A stretch of 64,000 bases of DNA from Oculina patagonica (GCF_052425735.1 NC_135758.1:35774001-35838000), one strand, 5' to 3'. Counted from the stretch's first letter, positions 47,428 to 60,097 are shown. The notes: generated from the sequence alone by a model not told the origin. Made by a program: numbers and translations.

Positions 47428-50400
47428 ATGGAGCAAGAACACAGAGAGATCCTTCGGAACCGTCGGATCCCCATCGCGGAGGATTTAGAGCCTTTAAAGT
47501 TGTTGAATAGACTAGATGTTATTGACGATGATGACAGGGAGGAGATAAAAACGAAGGAAACGCGAAGAGAACAAGCTTACGCATTACTCGACATGATTAT
47601 CAGGAAGGGACCTAATGCTTTTAAAAACTTTGTTTCTGCTTTATATGAACTTAAGAGCCAGAAACACCTCGCCGATCTTCTGATACAGGATTCAGGGATA
47701 CAGATAGCTTCTATTCCGAAAGGTAAGAATACTTTTTTCTCGAACGAGAAAAGGTTTAGGGTTTACTTGTTTTACTTTGAAGCAATAAAAATGTCAATAA
47801 TTAGCTAGGGCTCTGTCATTAGATGCCCACTCCCCGTCTCCTCTGCCCCCCCCCCCCCCCCCGCCTCTCCGTCCCCCTCCCACACATACTAAGGTATATA
47901 TTTGTTTGTTTCTTTTTTTCCTCACACAGCTGGGCATTTGAGAAAAGTGCAAAAATATGCCCCACCCATGAATGTGTTGTTCTTTCTCTAAAGCCGTGGA
48001 ACCAAGTCCCAATTTCATCAAAATTGGAATATTACCCTCTATGTGTAGTTGAGCTTGAGCCAACTGCCTAGAGTATGCCTGGAAAAGGGAGAATAGTTAT
48101 GCTGGAATAGCCAAAAAAAATTAGCTCATTTACTACCAAGGGTGTTTAGATCAACATCATTGCCCCAAACCAATGGCGGAACCAGACCTTCAGGTAAGTT
48201 GGGGCCTGATCATCCAGACTTCATGAATAAGAGGGGGGCTGATCTCAAGAGGACTTTTTCTCAACCCTACAGGTCTTAGTTTGGCCTGAAAAATTATAGG
48301 GGTGCCCACTCATTTGACTCATAAAACAGGGGACCTGACCTTGGCCGCTAGCATTTACTGATTTTTCAAATTATTTTTTTACATACATGTATTTGGAAAA
48401 CTCTTCACCTGTAAAGGTAACACTGGAATGTCAGGCCAACACAAGGAAATTCTCCGCAAAAATGTTGAAAACCTTCATCGCATGAGCCTAGATAAAATGG
48501 TGACTCAATTATCAGGTTTATTAGATGAACAAGATAAACAAAATCTACTTAATGTTGCAAAACCAGTCTCCCAAAGGGTAGAAATGCTTTTGACTGAAGT
48601 GCTCCCAAGAAGGGGTCCAACTGCTTTTAACTTGTTTGTGCAAGGGCTAGAGAAAGTCCATCCTTCAATGGCAGAAAAGCTTCTACAGGACGCTGGACTA
48701 AAAGGTACATGTACATAAGATTTGGAATGACATTGGTTAGTGTGCTGGACTTTACATTGACTGTACATTATTTGCAGTTACTCCTTATTCACCAGCATGC
48801 AGGGTAGAAAGAGGCTCAAGAACAAGCACCCTGCCCAAGACACTGTCTTGGTGTGCTCAACCTCTGAACCCCTATGTATCTTTATGTTCTTTCCACCCCG
48901 CATGCAGGTGAATTAAGTGGTACTAATTAATAATTTGTTATTGTTAGCGGACTAGAGTAAACCTGACAGGAGATATGAGCCACTGAATAATGATCAAGAT
49001 TCACAGCCTCAATATGGATACCATCGCCATCATCATCATCATCATTATTGTTATTATAATTATCATCACTTGCATGAATAGGCCAAACCTATAAAGCCCA
49101 GTATAGTAGCTCATAAGCCCTTGCATTAAACTCAGTTTTCTGGAGCATGAAGCAACTAGAAGTACTGCTACTTTCCCTAGAGGAGTATTGCTATTCTGTC
49201 AGGTTGCCGTAACAATTTGGCTGTACCATTTTTATTCTCGACTGGAGAGGTCTAGAGGGTGTGTGAATGTCAAGTGTCTACCCCAAGAACACAACCGAGT
49301 GACCCCTGCAGGGCTCACAGTTGCCTGGACTGCTTGACCCACTGACCATTAGGCCACTGCACTCTAAAAGTACAGTGTAAGTGTGAGTACTACAAGTAGG
49401 CCAGGAATCAAGGTGCAATGATGTGACTGTTAATTTCTCATTGTCAGTAGTCACAGAAAGGCAGGTACATGGACAGACACCTGGACAGTCAGACGGTCAG
49501 TTAGGTACTGGTTTTACAAACTTCCTTGTTTCTTCTTTTAAACTCTATTTTAAGTTATACTCTTTGGTCAACCTTGCCTTGCTACAAGTATCAATCTATA
49601 AATGCACATTCATATCCTCTCCCTTAATAGGATCTTCTTATAGTGAGGGATCACCTATAAAGTTCCCTGTACAAGACAGCAGTTCCTATTCATTTAACAC
49701 CCCAGTCCAAGACATTCTAGAGGAAAGACCTGAGTTGTTAAAAGAATTCAGGCTTCAAATGGATGAAGATGATATTTGGGGTAATGGATGGAAGAGGTTG
49801 GCTATAGTCATTCCCATTGTTTTACTTAAATGTTAACTGAAGTTAATTTAAGCAGTGTTATTTGTGATGCAAGTGTTATGTATTATGCACAGTAAATAAA
49901 TAATTACGGTATTAGTATTGACAGAATTGTAGGGAATGTATGAAACCAGTACAATTTGGATGGAGCCACACAATGGTCTCTGACAGTTAAATTCTCTCAT
50001 AATGCCATTCAATTTTTACTAGGTAAAATAGGCCTTTGCAATAGTTGGTCATGTGACCAACTTTCCATTAAAAACATATATATAGCAATTTATATAGAAA
50101 TATATATATAGAAATAGAAATAGTATAGAAATAAGCTAGCATGTAAATTTTCAGGCTTACTCTCTTCCCTCCCCCCCCCCCCCCCCAACTTAAAATGGGG
50201 TATCTTTATGACTGCTTGAAATTAAAAAGATTTGTATGAGAGGAAAAATGCCTTGCCATCCAGTCACGCTCATGTGCTTTTTCATACAAGTCCTTGTAAA
50301 TTTTAATACAGTCAAATCCTAATTTTTCAAACCTCCTGGGTCATTAAAATTGCTTTGAGAAATTGGGAGATAAGAAGTTAGGATTCTACTGTATTTCCAA

Positions 50401-53400
50401 AGCCCATAAAATCTCTCCCTTGCAGTTTACTGGCCTGACACTTCTGACTATGGTTAATTTTCTCACGCTCTTCCTACATCTTACAGACCACTGTCGTTTT
50501 AAAGAAATTAATAAATATTGAAAATTTATTTGGACAATATAGTTCTTCTCCAACCTCGTTCCCAGGGTCTCTCTCTTCCACTTCCTTACAAAACCTTCTA
50601 ATTACTCAAGTGTTCAAACCATCACAAAATCTCACCATTATGCCCCAATGATCTTAAAAATTGTATTTGGGTTACAATCCCAGACATCATTCTTGGGACA
50701 CTTGCTGTTTTTCCCACCTGAAACAAGAAATATCTGAGTAGTAATTCCCCCTCTCTCCCTTTCCAATGTCAAAAAAGCAATGCCTCCCATTACTGCGTAT
50801 TTTGCAACATTGTAACTGGGGAAGGGAGTCTCTCTTTAATAGTATTCGTAACGAATTGTTAAGTTATTTTTGTTAAATGGGGTGCCCCAAGTACTGGGAT
50901 TATAGGTAAAACACGCTCTCGGCTGTCCATTTCTTGAAATCGCATAACTCTAGCTACATGTTTATGATGGTTGGTTACGAGACCAATCTTTGGAAAAAGG
51001 CTTATTGGACCCTGTCTTTCTCTTGTGTGTTAATTAGGTTTTACAATGAACTTGGCCTTCCAGCCGGTAGAGAAACGACCATGCAGGGAAGAGATGGAGG
51101 CCCAACGTTAAATGTAATAAAGGGTTGGATTTCACTTAAAGGACGTGAAGCTACAGTTCAAGCTCTCCTCAGTGCTGTAAACCGTTCTGAGCGTAAAGAC
51201 TGTTCATATTGTCTGGAGAAAAGCCTGGGATGCCAACTGGACTGTGTTGATAGCCCCATTGAAAACTTGACTAAGGGAATGGGGTCACTGAGTAAGTAAA
51301 ATTAAGCAATCCTTTGTATAGCTGTTGGTTAACACAGTTGACTGGGAAAGAATTCCCTAACTATAGTTCTATTGAAGGTGGTTAAGAGTATTTTCGTGAT
51401 TCGTGAACGGCCTTATTTTCAGCTCCTGAAATGTGAAGTTATGGCTAGTTTTTTTATGTCCTATTATTTTCGACTTCCATCATTATGATTGTAATAAACA
51501 ATATTTCGTGAACGTGACAGGTCAATCGTCGATCCCTTTGAATTAATCTGTACCCTAAGAGCAAAGAGCGGACAGGTGGTGAAGATGTCATACAAGCAGT
51601 ACTTTGAACGTAATGTTTCAAAATCTCGCAACCTTTTGGAGATCGTGTTAATAAATGTCCCTCATTTTCAGTGAAACGTGAAATACTGCTGCTTAAACTA
51701 TCAGAGCTATTTGCCAGCAGAGCAAAGAGCAGACAGATGGTGAAGATGTCATACGAGGCAGTTCTTTGAACGTAACGTTTCAAAATCTCGCAAGTTATAG
51801 GAGATCGTGTCCCCAACTTAACATTGCAGCGAAAGTAACATGAACATTCCCGTTATTAACTGTAGTGTTGTTGTTTATTGTCGCTATTACCTACTATTGT
51901 GGTAGTTGTTATTTCTAATGTAAAGCCGCCTGTTTTTACGAGACTACCCTACAAAGGCACTTCAGGCTTCTTCAGCCCTATTTCTGTGAATATCACTGCA
52001 TAAACTGACAGTGTTACACATTTTACCTTCAACGTGAATTTTTTTTTAGTTTTGTTGTCTCTGTTGTCCCTCGCGACACTCACGTGTTGTGTTGTAAGTG
52101 GATTTACGATGGCCTTCCTAATCTTTGCAGGCCCCCGAGAAGTGAAATTCTTCGGAGATCTTAATGACAGTGAAGCTTCATTAATTTCAAGTAAACTGGG
52201 GCCGAATGCAAAGGCACTGTTGAGAAAGGAACTTGGAAACAGTAATATACCCACCAAGGACCTCATACTGCAGAGTAAGAACTATCCAATCCGCAGATAC
52301 ACGGATTTGGTACCGAGCAGTGACAGAGAAACAGCTATAAAGGTGTTAAGGGAAGCATTACCAACGTTTAAAGGTGTTACGGGTGAGTGATTGCGGGAGT
52401 GATAAGCTACGACTTAAGTCCGAGCCAAACGAGGATAAGAGTTGATGAGAGTTGACTCTCATGGGGGCTAAACGAGAACGAGAGTCCGTCAAACTCTCCG
52501 ATCGACTCTCATGAAAAATTTAAGCATGTTCAAGGTCGATGATAGTCGATGAGAGTGCGTGAGAGTCGATGAGAGTGTGTGAGAGTTTCAGGCCAAACGA
52601 GAGCCAGAGTTTGAACTCTTGTCAACTCCCATCCTCGTTTGGCCCGGGCTTTACGACTTTTAGCCAGTATTACGAAGTCATGCTATCGTACCTTTATTTT
52701 TCCTGTTTCTTGTCAAACCACTATGATAGCTATCTCAAATGTCCAGTGTGGTAAGCAGATTATGAGGAATGTTCAAGCTTTTTTGTAGTTTTTGGGCTTC
52801 ATCAGCTATTTCAGCCTTATATTCGGCCTCCTTTTAGCCTGTAAAGCTGGTGGTTCTTATCGCGCCATGACAAAATGGTGACGAAAAATTCCGCATACGT
52901 GAAAGTGAGTACTTTTTGCGTTTGTTGCAGGTGAACATAAGATATGTTTTCAAATTTCTGATGGATTTATTCATAATTCAAAAACAGAATCAGAATCAAT
53001 AGCAAGTTGCCTTTGCCGTTTGCGCCAGCGCTGTAGCGTAGTTTTTATTATTAATCTCTAAGTAATTTCGAGGCCATGAAAACGGTCAGAGGAAATTAAA
53101 TGAACCGTTTACAGCGTCGCTGCTTTTTTTCGGTTTTTTTGCTTGTTATTCAAGCAAAAAAAGGAGATATGTGGACAACTAATTCCCTCTCTTCCCGCAT
53201 ATTTGTTCACTCTCAGGGGACTGCTTTAATTTCTCAAGGGAATACTTTCCGCTGTGGGTGATCAAAGCGCGTGACTTGTAAAGTGTCACTCTATAGTTGT
53301 GCTTCAACACTTCGTTCTTGTACAAAAAACGTGACTTATATAACAAAACGTTAAACGTTATATAACAATTAAAAACGTTAAACGTTAAACGTTATATAAC

Positions 53401-55090
53401 AATTAAAAACGTGAGTAGCCCAAATCTTACGTGACATAACCAATTAAGAATGTGAGGGGTTCAGCGCTCGAAGGCAACGAAGTTTAAACGATTAGGAACG
53501 CAATTTGTACTGGTACAAGTCTTTAGGCGCTAATATTAATTTAACCTAAAACAATTAACAACGCAAATTTGTACTGATACAAGTCTTTCACACACTAAAA
53601 CGTTGCAAATAGTTAACCAAAGGGAATTCATTTCGTGACAATTGATTATTTCTGCTGAGTTGCACAATTTAGAATTGCAACATCATTCAATGCAGGTGTG
53701 AAGTGATGTTTACAAGTGATTTTGTAGCCATTTGTGAAATTACTTCCGGTGGAAGCAGTAAACGCTAAAAGTTTTTGCTTCTATCAGAAGTTAATGCATC
53801 GCCATTAGAAAACAAAATAAACAGCAACTGTTTTACTGGAAATGTAGTCGTTAGAAATGGCATGTGTAGCCGTAAGGGAAAGAATAACGCGAGGAGAAAC
53901 GGCTTTTGGTAATATCCAAACGAAAATTTTCTTTTCAATGTGGGGTTAAGATTGCGTGACGAGACAAAAGGTAACTCTGTCATGGTAACCTTTATCGGGA
54001 ACCCGTTAGAAATCTTTCTAACTCGAAAGGAAACAACTATTTCGATTAAAGGCAAACGTCAAAGTTTACCATTTTTAACCAAGCCAAAGTATATGAGTCG
54101 CAAAGCGCCCAGCCGTCGCGACTGACAAATACAGCATTTCCTCCGCGAAAATAAAACTGAAAGACGTTTGAATTCTTCCATGATATGTTCGAACAACAAT
54201 GCCCAGGATAAACCTTCTACTCATACTAACTTCATGCAAAAAAAGTCGATGTCTCGAAGAGATCTTTAATTAGGGAAAGGGGAGGGTTTAAGGAACAATG
54301 CGCAGTAAGGAAATAGGGTAAGCAAATTGAAGATCACTTGGGAGATAACTTGTTTACTTGTTTATTTGAATTGATTTGATTTTGAATTTTTTTTTTTAGG
54401 TCCAATGCTTTCGCCTATTACATTCATAAGAGAAGTTGGTTACACTTTCCGCAGAAATCTGACAAGAAACTTGTGCGGTACGTACCAATTTAATATCCTT
54501 CGTTTATTTCCGGCAAATACACAATCAATGCTGTAAAAAAACACCTGACCTTACTGATACCAAGTCGCGTTCCCGAGAGTGTCCTTTATAAACGGAGTTG
54601 AATCGAACTCGTATTTTGTGTTAGTTGGGTAAGGGACGCTTTCAAATAAACTTGCATCAACATACTGATGTCACAGTCGTTAACATTAAAACATTGTACC
54701 TTGCCAGTGTACTTTGAAACTGTAAACTGACGCAAACAGTTTTCCAAGAGTGGTCGTATAATTTTTCATGCATTTTATATATTTTTCTGATTGGATAAAA
54801 ATCAGTCGGAACTCTTCGCGTACCTTGGTAGTACGAAGTATCGTCAAACCCTTGTAGTCGTTGTAATTAATTTTGTCTAATTGTTATTTTTAGCTGACGA
54901 CCACTGGAAGTTCTTAGCCGAGAGACTTGGAATGGACAACAATTCAATCAAATACCTTGACTCCAAAAGGGTTGAAAATCCCGCCGATGAGGTCTTGAGA
55001 TATTGGGAGGTCAAAGCCAATAGCACCGTGGGAGCACTGTATGACATTCTAGTGGATATAGGATGTCCGTTCATTGCAGATCTTCTTTAA
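47428..55090 (+). CDS. Multi-death-fold adaptor (CARD-CARD-linker-DD-divergent DD-DD), 8 exons, ~528 aa
   Basis: Exons 47428-47722, 48417-48704, 49448-49504, 49631-49796, 51038-51291, 52131-52382, 54400-54477, 54894-55090; GT-AG, frame-consistent (1587 nt). CARDs with RKGPNAF / PRRGPTAF; DDs with WKRFYNELG...PT...W...ATVQALL and WKFLAERLG...P...LRYW...STVGALY. Confidence 0.8.
51558..51810. repeat. Intronic direct duplication (~90-bp unit, ~160-bp spacing)
   Basis: agagcaaagagc...ggtgaagatgtcatac...tttcaaaatctcgcaa...ggagatcgtgt occurs twice. Confidence 0.75.
52416..52651. mobile_element. MITE with gatgagag repeats
   Basis: Termini aagtccgagccaaacgagga / tcctcgtttggcccgggctt; flanked by tacgactt on both sides. 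Confidence 0.75.
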
Positions 55091-55746
55091 GAAATCAACT
55101 GGGAATACAAGAACGCTTTTAGATTGCACTCCCGAGTCTGCAGTCTTCGTGCGATGCGGTCTTCGTCTTTGAAGTTGCTAAGCAACGTGACCTATGCGTG
55201 TGATGTCATGATGATGTGACAACTTCCGTAGAACCTGGCTCAGTGCTTGCCCAATTTTTAGACTGATTGGTGATTTAGGGCCTGACTAAACCCCGGACTA
55301 AGCTTGGAAACATTCCTGCGAAAATAAATGTTTCCTAGTCTGCCCGGCCCGCGGAAAAACATATTTCGAAAATGTGTTTCTTGTATTAAAAAAAAAAAAC
55401 ATTTTTTTCTTTTACTCTAAAACAGTTGTTTCCGTACAAGTATTTCAGCGTTAACGTTTTCAAGGAGTCGAATCTCTTCGTGAAGGAACAATTCTTCCAA
55501 AACTATACTTCTGAGTTAACGCTGACATCAATTACGTTAACAGCGAAAATTTGATAGGTTCATCGAATGTGTCAGTGGTAGTCAGTGAAATGATTAGCTC
55601 GTGAATGCAGCCCTATTACTCTGCACCAGTAGACATAAACAAAAAACAAAAACCAGCGCGATAAACGATGAAAAACGTCGAACCGCTGTTGAGCCGGACC
55701 AAATGCATTGGAGCCAATTTTATCGGCTAAAACATTGGTCGGGGTA

Positions 55747-59503: not shown

Positions 59504-60097
59504 ATGACCTGGGTCGAAGATATCGATTCCATGTTTCCGTGGGCGACAAGCAACCTACGAGCAATGTATGAACGCGTTGTCAGCTTGAAGGACTGCCAAG
59601 TAATGCGTGCACTCAGACAAACCAAGCAATTTATTGAGAACCATCCACTCATCTCACTGTTCCTAGCCATCTTAGTTATCATTGGTTTTCTACCATTCTT
59701 CGTGTTCCTGGCCTTTGTATCAAGCTCGTTCGTGGTAGTCTCAATGAGTGCGCTAGCACTACTTGGGGGATCATTTGTGGTGGCGTTCTTCTCATTTCTC
59801 GTTGTTCTCTCCCCATTGCTGGTCTTTGGAGGCATACTGGCAGTCTTCGTTTACCTTACATTCCGTTTTGCAATGAGAATACTGCAAGTCTTCAAGCAAC
59901 TGAAATACAAGCTGTACGTATCTCGGCATTCAAGACGTCATCCTCGTTGTAAAGAATCAATCCAATTTGTTGACTGTCAAGTTGAACCGGCAAGCTTCCC
60001 GGTAGAATACGAACATTCTTTTATCACAGCAACTAATGAAGAACTGTCCAGGGAGGAGGAATCCCTGAACAGTCACTCTTCTTATCTCAGTTACTAG
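59504..60097 (+). CDS. LDAF1: Promethin / lipid droplet assembly factor 1-like membrane protein, 197 aa
   Basis: FIENHPLISLFL...LPFFVFL followed by a ~70-aa uninterrupted hydrophobic double hairpin, the promethin (TMEM159) pattern; likely 5'-UTR intron 59161-59491. Confidence 0.65.
   Translation: MTWVEDIDSMFPWATSNLRAMYERVVSLKDCQVMRALRQTKQFIENHPLISLFLAILVIIGFLPFFVFLAFVSSSFVVVSMSALALLGGSFVVAFFSFLVVLSPLLVFGGILAVFVYLTFRFAMRILQVFKQLKYKLYVSRHSRRHPRCKESIQFVDCQVEPASFPVEYEHSFITATNEELSREEESLNSHSSYLSY

Follow-up and report, generated by a model that had tools for sequence, protein, structure and literature searches.

Within the 64,000-nucleotide stretch of Oculina patagonica DNA analyzed here (the window), the locus LOC144627991, at positions 47428-55090 on the plus strand, is a real and intact gene whose product combines five modules: two CARDs, two death domains (DD1 and DD3) and a compact helical unit that we call region X. 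Our best reading is that the protein belongs to a family of cytosolic adaptors, without an enzymatic domain, that has so far been found only in stony corals. Splice sites and reading frame were checked, and the coding model consists of eight GT-AG exons and seven introns that together give one 527 amino acid frame without internal stops or frameshifts. All of the ORF pieces that an earlier note on this DNA had joined, six ORFs and a short exon making a frame of about 528 residues, were recovered at canonical sites, and its eight junctions proved to be seven introns.

Exon 1 (47428-47722; residues 1-98) carries the start codon and CARD1; an in-frame TGA lies 117 nt upstream of the start, and Met1 is kept in the orthologs. 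CARD2 is encoded by exon 2 (48417-48704; residues 99-194), which is 288 nt long and symmetric (phase 1-1). Exon 3 (49451-49504; residues 195-212), an 18 amino acid linker with AG/GT sites and phase 1-1, was revealed by alignment to the paralog P0030; it is predicted with a pLDDT below 30 by AlphaFold2 (AF2) and was seen in the two Oculina genes only (P0030 and P0033 carry it), being absent from all other orthologs. A disordered linker with a TRAF-like motif and the N-terminal part of DD1 are encoded by exon 4 (49631-49796; residues 213-267), and the C-terminal part of DD1 (residues 268-333), followed by the start of the next linker, by exon 5 (51038-51291). Region X corresponds to exon 6 (52131-52382; residues 353-436). 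Exon 7 (54400-54477; residues 437-462; AG/GT, phase 1-1) is the short exon reported earlier as absent from the ORF track; it corresponds to a 43-aa ORF, is 100% identical to P0030 and P0033, and contributes a linker (G-P-L/M-L-x-P) and the first helix of the C-terminal death domain. The remainder of that domain, DD3, is encoded by exon 8 (54894-55090; residues 463-527), which ends in a TAA stop at 55088-55090, with an AATAAA downstream at 55323. All exon junctions are phase 1 with the sole exception of 49796/51038, which is phase 2. The introns of this 7.6-kb model are rich in transposons.

The CARDs and the death domains are encoded on a single transcript. The NCBI protein P0033 (LOC144627991 isoform X5, 451 aa) runs from exon 1 to exon 8 and agrees with the model letter for letter, with 100% identity, apart from residues 100-175, which are missing owing to an internal alternative acceptor at 48643-48644 within exon 2; the X5 junction was confirmed. 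An mRNA-like contig of 1804 nt from a relative contains a whole 510-aa ORF, uninterrupted and with an in-frame stop upstream, full-length proteins are also encoded by several more contigs, 1.7-3.4 kb long, and the order of the exons is identical in two divergent genomic loci. The search returned no contigs encoding P0030. Neither of the outcomes that had been named as counting against the gene, separate CARD and death domain genes or a continuation into a catalytic domain, was found in the mRNA-like contig, P0033 or the closed ORF, and an upstream or downstream continuation of the latter kind is ruled out by the in-frame stops, the conserved Met1 and the conserved C-terminus. Because phase 1-1 domain exons can be skipped without a shift of frame, isoforms without CARD2 or the C-terminal death domain stay in frame. 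Exon 2 is skipped in P0009 (Pocillopora verrucosa isoform X2), and P0009, P0033 and P0034 are all NCBI models that lack CARD2 or DD3. This exon-per-domain, phase 1-1 layout cleanly illustrates exon shuffling and the rewiring of signaling valency at the level of isoforms.

Pfam and AF2 together resolved five folded units, CARD1, CARD2, DD1, region X and DD3, on disordered linkers, and VIA gave strong structural matches for four of the five. The linkers had a pLDDT below 50 and the pTM was 0.29, as for beads on a string. Two CARD matches (E 4.5e-13 and 2.6e-4) and two Death matches (E 8e-10 and 0.014) were obtained from the raw exons, and two CARD and two Death stretches from the full-length orthologs; these place the protein in the CARD family (Pfam PF00619) and, through two separate regions, in the Death family (PF00531). 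No catalytic, TIR, NACHT or transmembrane domain was found in the exons or the full-length orthologs, as the earlier note had proposed, nor was a helicase or LRR, and the ORF is closed at both ends. The AF2 secondary structure contained no terminal hydrophobic helix, the C-terminus being a death domain. For the study of death folds, the gene offers a naturally occurring adaptor whose five modules are joined by flexible linkers.

CARD1 scored 49.5 bits (E 4.5e-13) against a Pfam cut-off of 23.9 and was modeled by AF2 with a pLDDT of about 88; against the caspase-9/Apaf-1 CARD complex (4rhw, 3ygs), VIA gave Z 16 for the CARD of either protein. The CARD2 exon of the window taken alone reached 21.4 bits (E 2.6e-4), just below the same cut-off of 23.9; in full-length orthologs it is the second CARD stretch, and its fold is that of a CARD (VIA Z 11.6 to BinCARD). 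For both window exons the top match among solved structures was the RAIDD CARD. The family profile of CARD2 likewise placed the RAIDD CARD (3crd) first, at E 3.3e-9, with the next match four orders of magnitude behind. Among solved structures the CARD1 profile matched RIG-I CARD2 best (E 9e-9), and also CARD8, Apaf-1, caspase-9 and RAIDD; its matches to caspase-9 and RAIDD were no better than those to RIG-I CARD2 and CARD8. The earlier description of the CARDs as RAIDD- and caspase-like thus agrees with the CARD2 profile and, among other matches, with that of CARD1. ICEBERG, a CARD-only inhibitor, was another solved structure that the CARD profiles matched, and comparison of the CARD fold with the filaments of the MAVS CARD gave Z 13.

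Of all the proteins retrieved, a caspase prodomain was by far the nearest to CARD1. The prodomain CARD of a coral CARD-caspase, P0042, shares 41% identity with CARD1 (E 7e-19), and the protease domain of the same caspase matches PDB 6wi4 (E 1e-130), which we take to be the crystal structure of PaCasp7a. Mean identity was 39.9% between CARD1 and the caspase CARD, compared with 31.6% between CARD1 and CARD2 and 30.5% between CARD2 and the caspase CARD. The roughly 40% identity of CARD1 to the CARD-caspase-3/7 prodomain suggests that the CARDs of the adaptor and of the caspase share an origin, which by itself does not prove binding.

DD1 occupies residues 231-333 of the AF2 model and is split by an intron. 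Exon 5 alone gave a partial Pfam Death match of 15.9 bits, and a full Death stretch is present in orthologs (P0011, 230-308). The DD1 model had a VIA Z of 11.3 to the IRAK4 death domain, and its profile matched the death domains of NRADD, ankyrin and p75NTR; the RAIDD death domain, which is in the PDB (2of5), was not retrieved by this profile. DD3 scored 39.1 bits (E 8.2e-10) against a Pfam Death cut-off of 22.6. Its profile matched the FADD, MyD88, IRAK4 and Pelle death domains (E 1e-4 to 1.5e-3) and its VIA Z to the Pelle domain was 10.8, which bears out the MyD88/IRAK/Pelle likeness noted earlier, with FADD scoring equally well so that no one subfamily is favored.

Up to three death domains had been proposed, and two of these are demonstrable; the middle module, region X, lacks a Pfam or profile signal and is weakly death-fold-like, so that a third death domain is unproven. 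AF2 modeled region X on its own with a pLDDT of 86 as five helices and a short first turn. None of 31 family members gave a Pfam match in this region, Foldseek against the PDB returned nothing at E <1, and neither phmmer against the PDB nor an ESM Atlas feature search gave a significant match. Comparison of region X with DD1, DD3 and CARD1 by hhalign gave probabilities below 1%, although hhalign is insensitive with such shallow alignments, and since even DD1 against DD3 reached a probability of only 4.5% these negatives carry little weight. In an unbiased VIA scan of the PDB most of the top 50 structures were DED, DD or PYD folds, at Z scores of at most 5.0, and in AFDB the only models with a TM score of 0.5 or above were death domains (up to 0.58), the EDARADD domain among them. 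Region X is at most a weak candidate for a death domain, the resemblance being weak and at the level of fold. An exhaustive HMMER search returned 20 clusters only, confining the module to this coral family.

Two short motifs in the linkers are conserved. P-V-Q-D-S (residues 225-229; 49666-49680), directly before DD1, resembles the PVQET of CD40 and MAVS and lies in a segment with a pLDDT below 50; the pattern [PSA]-[VI]-Q-[DET]-[TSAV], in which the Gln is invariant, is present in nearly all orthologs and in the loci L002 and L003. In MAVS, PVQET is a TRAF2/5-binding motif (PMC5963799). Just after DD1, L-D-C-V-D (residues 335-339; 51237-51251) contains a D-x-x-D, a candidate cleavage site for caspases (DXXDases), at the edge of a segment (334-354) with a pLDDT below 50. 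Both of its Asp residues are invariant in 21 sequences, comprising 17 of 17 aligned proteins together with P0046, P0047, L002 and L003. DXXD and PxQxT are short, and their conservation can have structural reasons.

Orthologs of 504-527 aa were found in Montipora, Acropora, Porites, Pocillopora, Orbicella and Oculina, and every stony coral sampled has the family; the paralog P0030 is 94% identical across all 527 residues. Mean column identity across the sampled genera is 64-71% per module and 49% for region X, and all orthologs stop at the same C-terminal residue. Single-sequence, profile and region-restricted searches, together with HMMER run exhaustively on region X, found no homologs outside stony corals, the word-index searches being of limited sensitivity (P0012, for example, was missed). 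The named matches are all stony coral proteins of about 510 aa labeled "uncharacterized". The description of the protein as undescribed goes too far: the gene and its orthologs already have public entries, in which the predicted proteins are called 'uncharacterized' or 'Death domain-containing'. Literature searches, including ortholog accessions and 'CARD-DD' in cnidarians, found no characterized protein of the same architecture and no paper on the family.

The reading that we favor, and to which we give a little less than an even chance, is that the protein is a multivalent RAIDD-like adaptor linking death domain and TRAF inputs to the activation of CARD-caspases. The two death domains would dock homotypically on upstream death domain proteins, either receptors of the TNFR/Fas type or MyD88/IRAK-, PIDD- or FADD-like proteins, while the P-V-Q-D-T/S motif before DD1 may recruit TRAFs. 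Clustering would then allow the N-terminal CARDs to nucleate and to recruit caspases of the PaCasp7a/OfCasp3a type (the coral CARD-caspase-3/7 clade, with DXXD specificity), which would be activated by induced proximity in a step like that of RAIDD and the PIDDosome. As feedback, the activated DXXDase might cut at the D-x-x-D after DD1 and part the CARD-CARD-DD1 half from the X-DD3 half, and in-frame isoforms without CARD2 or the C-terminal death domain could tune or antagonize signaling. Every binding partner named here, as well as the D-x-x-D cleavage, is putative and predicted from sequence. The proposals of the earlier note that such a protein could nucleate its own helical assembly and couple Myddosome, PIDDosome or TNFR platforms to caspases or RLRs are speculative and go beyond what the analysis supports.

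Bleaching and disease sensitivity are linked to whether or not coral cells enter apoptosis under heat stress or disease. The coral CARD-caspases are weakly dimeric DXXDases whose activation was proposed to take place on an unidentified PIDDosome-like platform (Shrestha et al. 2020, PMC7586219), and the activation step of these caspase-3/7-like enzymes is explicitly described as unknown in that study. For that step the gene provides a candidate that is concrete and can be cloned. It is conceivable, if on balance doubtful, that the stony-coral adaptor is the missing platform of Shrestha et al. 2020 for DXXDases of the OfCasp3a/PaCasp7a clade: a single polypeptide in which DD1, DD3 and PVQD[ST] would integrate the inputs from death domain receptors and TRAFs, and which would nucleate caspase CARDs through its tandem CARDs and be severed at D-x-x-D by the caspase that it activates, with region X as a hitherto unrecognized and far diverged branch of the death folds. 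The CARD-caspase-3/7 clade has been reported in cnidarians beyond stony corals (PMC7586219); the adaptor, known from stony corals alone, cannot be the universal platform of the clade. New here are the likeness of CARD1 to the caspase prodomain, the invariant D-x-x-D and the CD40/MAVS-like P-V-Q-D-T/S motif. The candidate role predicts CARD-CARD binding to caspases, cleavage at D-x-x-D and TRAF binding at PVQD[ST]; should these predictions fail, the gene would be one more lineage-specific death-fold combination, as in amphioxus and sea urchin.

The same modules could instead form an NF-kB or antiviral hub with a transcriptional output, in which DD3 would enter a Myddosome-like complex, the CARDs would seed a filament of the BCL10/CARD-CC or RLR/MAVS type and PVQD[ST] would recruit TRAFs. 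We consider this rather unlikely. The profile matches of DD3 to MyD88, IRAK4 and Pelle, together with its VIA score to Pelle, would fit such a hub, as would the RIG-I CARD2 match of the CARD1 profile and the MAVS-like order of a CARD and a disordered linker with a PVQET-like motif, but the caspase prodomain is by far nearer to CARD1 than any other protein retrieved, CARD2 is RAIDD-like, and the protein has neither the transmembrane anchor of MAVS nor the TIR of MyD88. In addition, the tandem CARDs, which are joined by a low-confidence linker, could not be superposed on the rigid 2CARD unit of RIG-I, the rmsd being about 14.6 A.

Death-fold assemblies are capped or sequestered by ICEBERG/COPs, cFLIP and MyD88s. 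A multivalent decoy or brake that acts on death domain and CARD assemblies in this way, with short isoforms as dominant negatives, would account for five interaction modules without an output domain, for the annotated in-frame isoforms that lack domains (P0009, P0033, P0034) and for the CARD profile matches to ICEBERG. We regard it as improbable: the characterized bipartite adaptors RAIDD, FADD and ASC likewise lack effector domains, yet are activators, and the conservation of the modules across the sampled genera (64-71%, with region X at 49%) favors a bridging role that needs both ends. An artifact, either a CARD-CARD gene and a neighboring death domain gene wrongly merged in a model that initially rested only on in-silico splicing over 7.6 kb with transposon-rich introns, or a decaying pseudogene, is effectively refuted by the unbroken ORF of the mRNA-like contig, by the further full-length contigs, by the NCBI isoform that joins exon 1 through exon 8 at 100% identity, and by the absence of stops and frameshifts in an architecture that is constant in every stony coral genus sampled.

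The proposed caspase adaptor resembles RAIDD/CRADD in being non-enzymatic, in having a CARD N-terminal to a death domain over a flexible linker, in the similarity of its CARDs and in its proposed role of recruiting a CARD-bearing DXXDase. It differs in having five modules and 527 aa, compared with two modules and about 200 aa in RAIDD, the additions being one more CARD, a further death domain and region X. Since DD1 is not RAIDD-like (NRADD, ankyrin and p75NTR were its best matches), the coral protein is not a RAIDD ortholog. With MAVS it has in common a CARD and, after it, a disordered linker that bears a PVQET-type motif, but it has two CARDs and two death domains and neither a proline-rich region nor a transmembrane anchor, its C-terminus being a death domain with no terminal hydrophobic helix in the AF2 model, so that it falls outside MAVS. 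Two consecutive N-terminal CARDs are also found in RIG-I/MDA5 and NOD2; the coral protein, whose predicted CARD-CARD orientation differs, lacks the helicase, NACHT and LRR of these sensors, and its ORF, closed at both ends, contains no sensor module.

The C-terminal death domain is similar in sequence and fold to those of MyD88, Tube, Pelle and IRAK4, but the coral protein has no kinase domain and no TIR and ends at the death domain in all orthologs, which excludes it from MyD88. EDARADD also carries a TRAF-type motif directly upstream of a death domain, and that domain has a TM score above 0.5 to region X; it is, however, a single-death-domain protein to which no significant sequence link was found. 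New combinations of death folds in invertebrates are a known phenomenon, and the novelty claimed earlier for the architecture was overstated: in amphioxus and sea urchin, lineage-specific shuffling of DD, DED and CARD has produced new 'shortcut' architectures in immune and apoptosis networks (PMC2575513). The coral family appears to reflect the same evolutionary process, with phase 1-1 domain exons as exon shuffling predicts, while the amphioxus and sea urchin proteins are encoded by different genes, in deuterostomes, and the coral family has an extra module of its own, region X.

The O. patagonica gene LOC144627991 (47428-55090, forward strand) encodes a putative adaptor protein of 527 aa. 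Pfam recognized two CARD and two Death domains in the window exons, and on the full-length orthologues it reported two CARD and two Death stretches only, with no TIR, NACHT, kinase, caspase or TM domain. The presence of two CARDs in one protein and the lack of catalytic, TIR, NACHT and TM domains, both read earlier from the DNA, therefore hold. An AlphaFold2 model of the paralogue P0030, made with a 17-sequence family alignment, contained five folded units separated by linkers of pLDDT <50, and its pTM of 0.29 leads us to read the protein as beads on a string. The best structural matches were the caspase-9/Apaf-1 CARDs (4rhw, 3ygs; Z 16) for CARD1 (residues 1-94, pLDDT ~88), BinCARD (Z 11.6) for CARD2 (residues 102-193, pLDDT ~84), the IRAK4 death domain (Z 11.3) for DD1 (residues 231-333, pLDDT ~78) and the Pelle death domain (Z 10.8) for the C-terminal DD3 (residues 449-527, pLDDT ~70). 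Aligned together to the RIG-I 2CARD unit, the two CARDs gave an rmsd of ~14.6 A, and the model thus does not reproduce the rigid arrangement of RIG-I. When family profiles were compared with PDB sequences, CARD2 matched the RAIDD CARD (E 3.3e-9; next CARD9, 3e-5), CARD1 matched RIG-I CARD2 (9e-9), CARD8, Apaf-1, caspase-9 and RAIDD, DD1 matched the death domains of NRADD, ankyrin-G and p75NTR, and DD3 those of FADD, MyD88, IRAK4 and Pelle. These matches weakly bear out the affinities proposed in the earlier note, namely RAIDD/caspase-like CARDs and a MyD88/IRAK/Pelle-like C-terminal death domain; such weakness is common among death folds.

Exon 6 by itself encodes the fifth unit, region X (residues 355-430, pLDDT ~83 in the P0030 model). 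Across 31 members it matched no Pfam family, no sequence relative was found in PDB, and profile-profile comparison with DD1, DD3 and CARD1 gave no signal. Folded alone from a 31-sequence alignment (pLDDT 86, pTM 0.73), it forms five helices and a short first turn. A Foldseek search against PDB returned nothing significant, and when 48,161 chains were scanned with VIA without bias, a vFLIP DED and the RAIDD death domain came out on top with a Z of only 5.0, although the top 50 were mostly DED, DD, PYD or CARD folds. In AlphaFold DB the sole significant match was A0A2B4S753, a 514 aa protein with the same region, while the other models with TM >=0.5 were all death domains (EDARADD, p75NTR, NF-kB p105, UNC5CL and MALT1-like). 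The models suggest that region X is probably a degenerate death fold, which is unproven. Of the up to three death domains originally proposed, two are thus secure and the third lacks Pfam or profile signal, and the supported architecture is two CARDs, two death domains and one family-specific helical module.

With the full-length protein as query, the first matches beyond the adaptor family were coral CARD-caspases annotated as "caspase-3-like". The window CARD1 shared 41% identity (E 7e-19) with the prodomain CARD of P0042, a coral CARD-caspase, and over all pairs the mean identity was 39.9% between CARD1 and caspase CARDs, 31.6% between CARD1 and CARD2, and 30.5% between CARD2 and caspase CARDs. 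The protease domain of P0042 matched PDB entry 6wi4 (E 1e-130), which we take to be the crystal structure of PaCasp7a from Shrestha et al. 2020. The coral caspases OfCasp3a and PaCasp7a are CARD-bearing DXXDases and weak dimers like initiator caspases, and a PIDDosome-like platform was proposed for their activation (PMC7586219). Since the adaptor has no enzymatic domain, a CARD1 that is closest, among the proteins retrieved, to the caspase prodomain, and a RAIDD-like CARD2, it is a natural candidate platform for the coral CARD-caspases.

Two linker motifs give further hints at the mechanism. Directly after the last DD1 helix, where a disordered linker starts, lies a D-x-x-D motif (L-D-C-V-D, 51237-51251) whose two Asp residues were invariant in the 21 sequences inspected (21/21) and which reads D-E-V-D in one orthologue; it is a candidate cleavage site for the coral DXXDases. 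The disordered linker before DD1 carries a family-conserved [PSA]-[VI]-Q-[DET]-[TSAV] motif with an invariant Gln, the TRAF-like window copy being P-V-Q-D-S (49666-49680, forward strand). TRAF-binding motifs of the PVQET type are present in CD40 as well as in MAVS. The PVQET of MAVS binds TRAF2/5 (PMC5963799).

The likeliest explanation, though a tentative one, is that the protein may be a multivalent RAIDD-like adaptor for the CARD-caspase-3/7 clade with D-x-x-D cleavage feedback. Upstream input would arrive through the death domains, possibly also through the TRAF motif, the adaptor CARDs would recruit and activate the caspases, and caspase cutting at the D-x-x-D would provide the feedback. 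We infer all partner assignments from domain similarity and motif conservation. A Myddosome- or MAVS-like hub in NF-kB or antiviral signaling, to which the PVQET-like motif and the DD3 profile matches are relevant, appears unlikely, and a multivalent decoy appears quite improbable.

The coding sequence is a single 1584-nt frame including the stop, assembled from eight exons at AG...GT sites by sequence reading and a script check. All exons lie on the forward strand: exons 1 (47428-47722), 2 (48417-48704), 4 (49631-49796), 5 (51038-51291), 6 (52131-52382), 7 (54400-54477) and 8 (54894-55090), together with the 54-nt exon 3 (49451-49504), which was exposed by alignment to a database orthologue. 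The scattered ORFs on which the gene was first proposed were all present in an ORF scan of 46.5-56.5 kb, and the single frame of ~528 aa became a spliced product of 527 aa; the model has seven introns in place of the "eight junctions" first counted. Introns 1 and 4 contain long poly-C homopolymer runs (47840-47862 and 50175-50188). All junctions are phase 1 with the sole exception of 49796/51038, which is phase 2 and lies inside the first death domain, so that the exons encoding CARD2, an 18-aa linker, region X and the first part of DD3 are symmetric 1-1. Because of this symmetry, isoforms without CARD2 or DD3 stay in frame. Annotated isoforms of Pocillopora verrucosa (P0009) and O. patagonica (P0033) lack CARD2, and an Orbicella isoform X2 (P0034) ends after region X without DD3. 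The donor after exon 6 (52383-52390) reads GTGAGTGA, so retention of this intron adds one residue (Glu) and then a stop, and the Orbicella isoform has precisely this kind of ending. This suggests that a short isoform without the C-terminal death domain is conserved.

P0033 (451 aa) is residue for residue the same as the window model except that residues 100-175 are absent through use of an internal acceptor at 48643-48644, which identifies the window gene as the source of this Oculina protein. The paralogue LOC144667044 (P0030, 527 aa) aligns to the model without gaps at 94% identity. An 1804-nt contig from run SRR31906426, which we regard as RNA-derived since it lacks introns, contains an uninterrupted orthologous ORF of 510 aa (63% identical), with an in-frame stop 24 nt 5' of the ATG and a 5' leader resembling the window sequence immediately upstream of 47428. 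Full-length proteins are also encoded on several other contigs of 1.7-3.4 kb. The window has an in-frame TGA 117 nt 5' of the adaptor ATG, and the start Met and the position of the final residue are common to all orthologues. One transcript thus carries both the CARD and the death-domain exons, which might have belonged to separate genes, and no catalytic domain follows in the ORF. The gene is genuine, intact and conserved, and an artefact of gene modeling is effectively excluded.

Searched exhaustively with HMMER, the most idiosyncratic exon (52133-52381) returned 20 clusters, full-length proteins included, and word-index searches then recovered the family, whose orthologues include LOC110048990, LOC131796025 and LOC141875405. 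The named matches were all from stony corals (Montipora, Acropora, Porites, Pocillopora, Orbicella and Oculina), genera that together cover both major stony coral clades, and were mostly full-length at 504-527 aa, the shorter ones being isoforms or partial gene models. In a region-restricted search the kept matches ended at E 3e-82, with none from there to the 1e-3 limit. Database searches, in which sea-anemone and octocoral genomes were not directly covered, found no homologue outside stony corals. Two ENA genomic loci, whose X exons diverge most (36-40% identity), share with the window gene the exon order CARD, CARD, DD1a, DD1b, X, DD3a, DD3b. A Montipora foliosa protein (P0012, 347 aa), named 'doublesex- and mab-3-related transcription factor A2-like' at NCBI, consists of a partial DM domain, a long disordered stretch, region X and the DD3 module; it represents a chimeric gene model or else a distinct paralogue with the X-DD3 half and no CARDs or DD1.

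Downstream of the adaptor lies a Promethin-family membrane protein gene (59504-60097, forward strand; PF16015, E 2.4e-8), and a Promethin match has the same relative position in one divergent ENA locus (L003, 20101-20378), indicating a conserved neighborhood. Elsewhere in the window, a forward-strand tandem array holds five intronless rhodopsin-family GPCR genes (1150-2055, 6113-6976, 9749-10622, 18337-19305 and 33382-34611; Pfam 7tm_1 E 4e-30 and 6e-31 in two tested copies). The ORF is split in two of the genes, overlapping in one (9749-10357 with 10272-10622) and separated in the other (33382-34026 with 34288-34611), and both resemble pseudogenes with a frameshift or an interruption. On the reverse strand, a near-intact non-LTR retrotransposon (22077-26988; RVT_1 E 7.5e-33, Exo_endo_phos E 1e-20) has a 980-aa endonuclease and reverse transcriptase ORF, an overlapping zf-RVT ORF and, upstream, a coiled-coil ORF1-like protein (26065-26988). 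Also on that strand, tyrosine-recombinase ORFs (12858-14705; Phage_integrase E 4e-5, the adjoining ORF having no Pfam match) are probably a DIRS/Crypton-type mobile element within the GPCR array.

The family is named in databases only as "uncharacterized", "hypothetical" or "Death domain-containing protein", and no description of it was found in the published literature. No characterized adaptor matches the architecture, but to call it undescribed is an overstatement, as databases already list the protein as a prediction with no name. That invertebrates have novel combinations of death folds is well known (PMC2575513), and such combinations are to be expected; this adaptor, however, carries a specific link, open to testing, to an unsolved problem of coral apoptosis. 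Membership of the RAIDD, MyD88, MAVS or RLR families was rejected because a defining feature fails for each, which places the adaptor outside all four. The P-V-Q-D-S of the linker before DD1 resembles the MAVS PVQET and is a candidate TRAF-binding motif.
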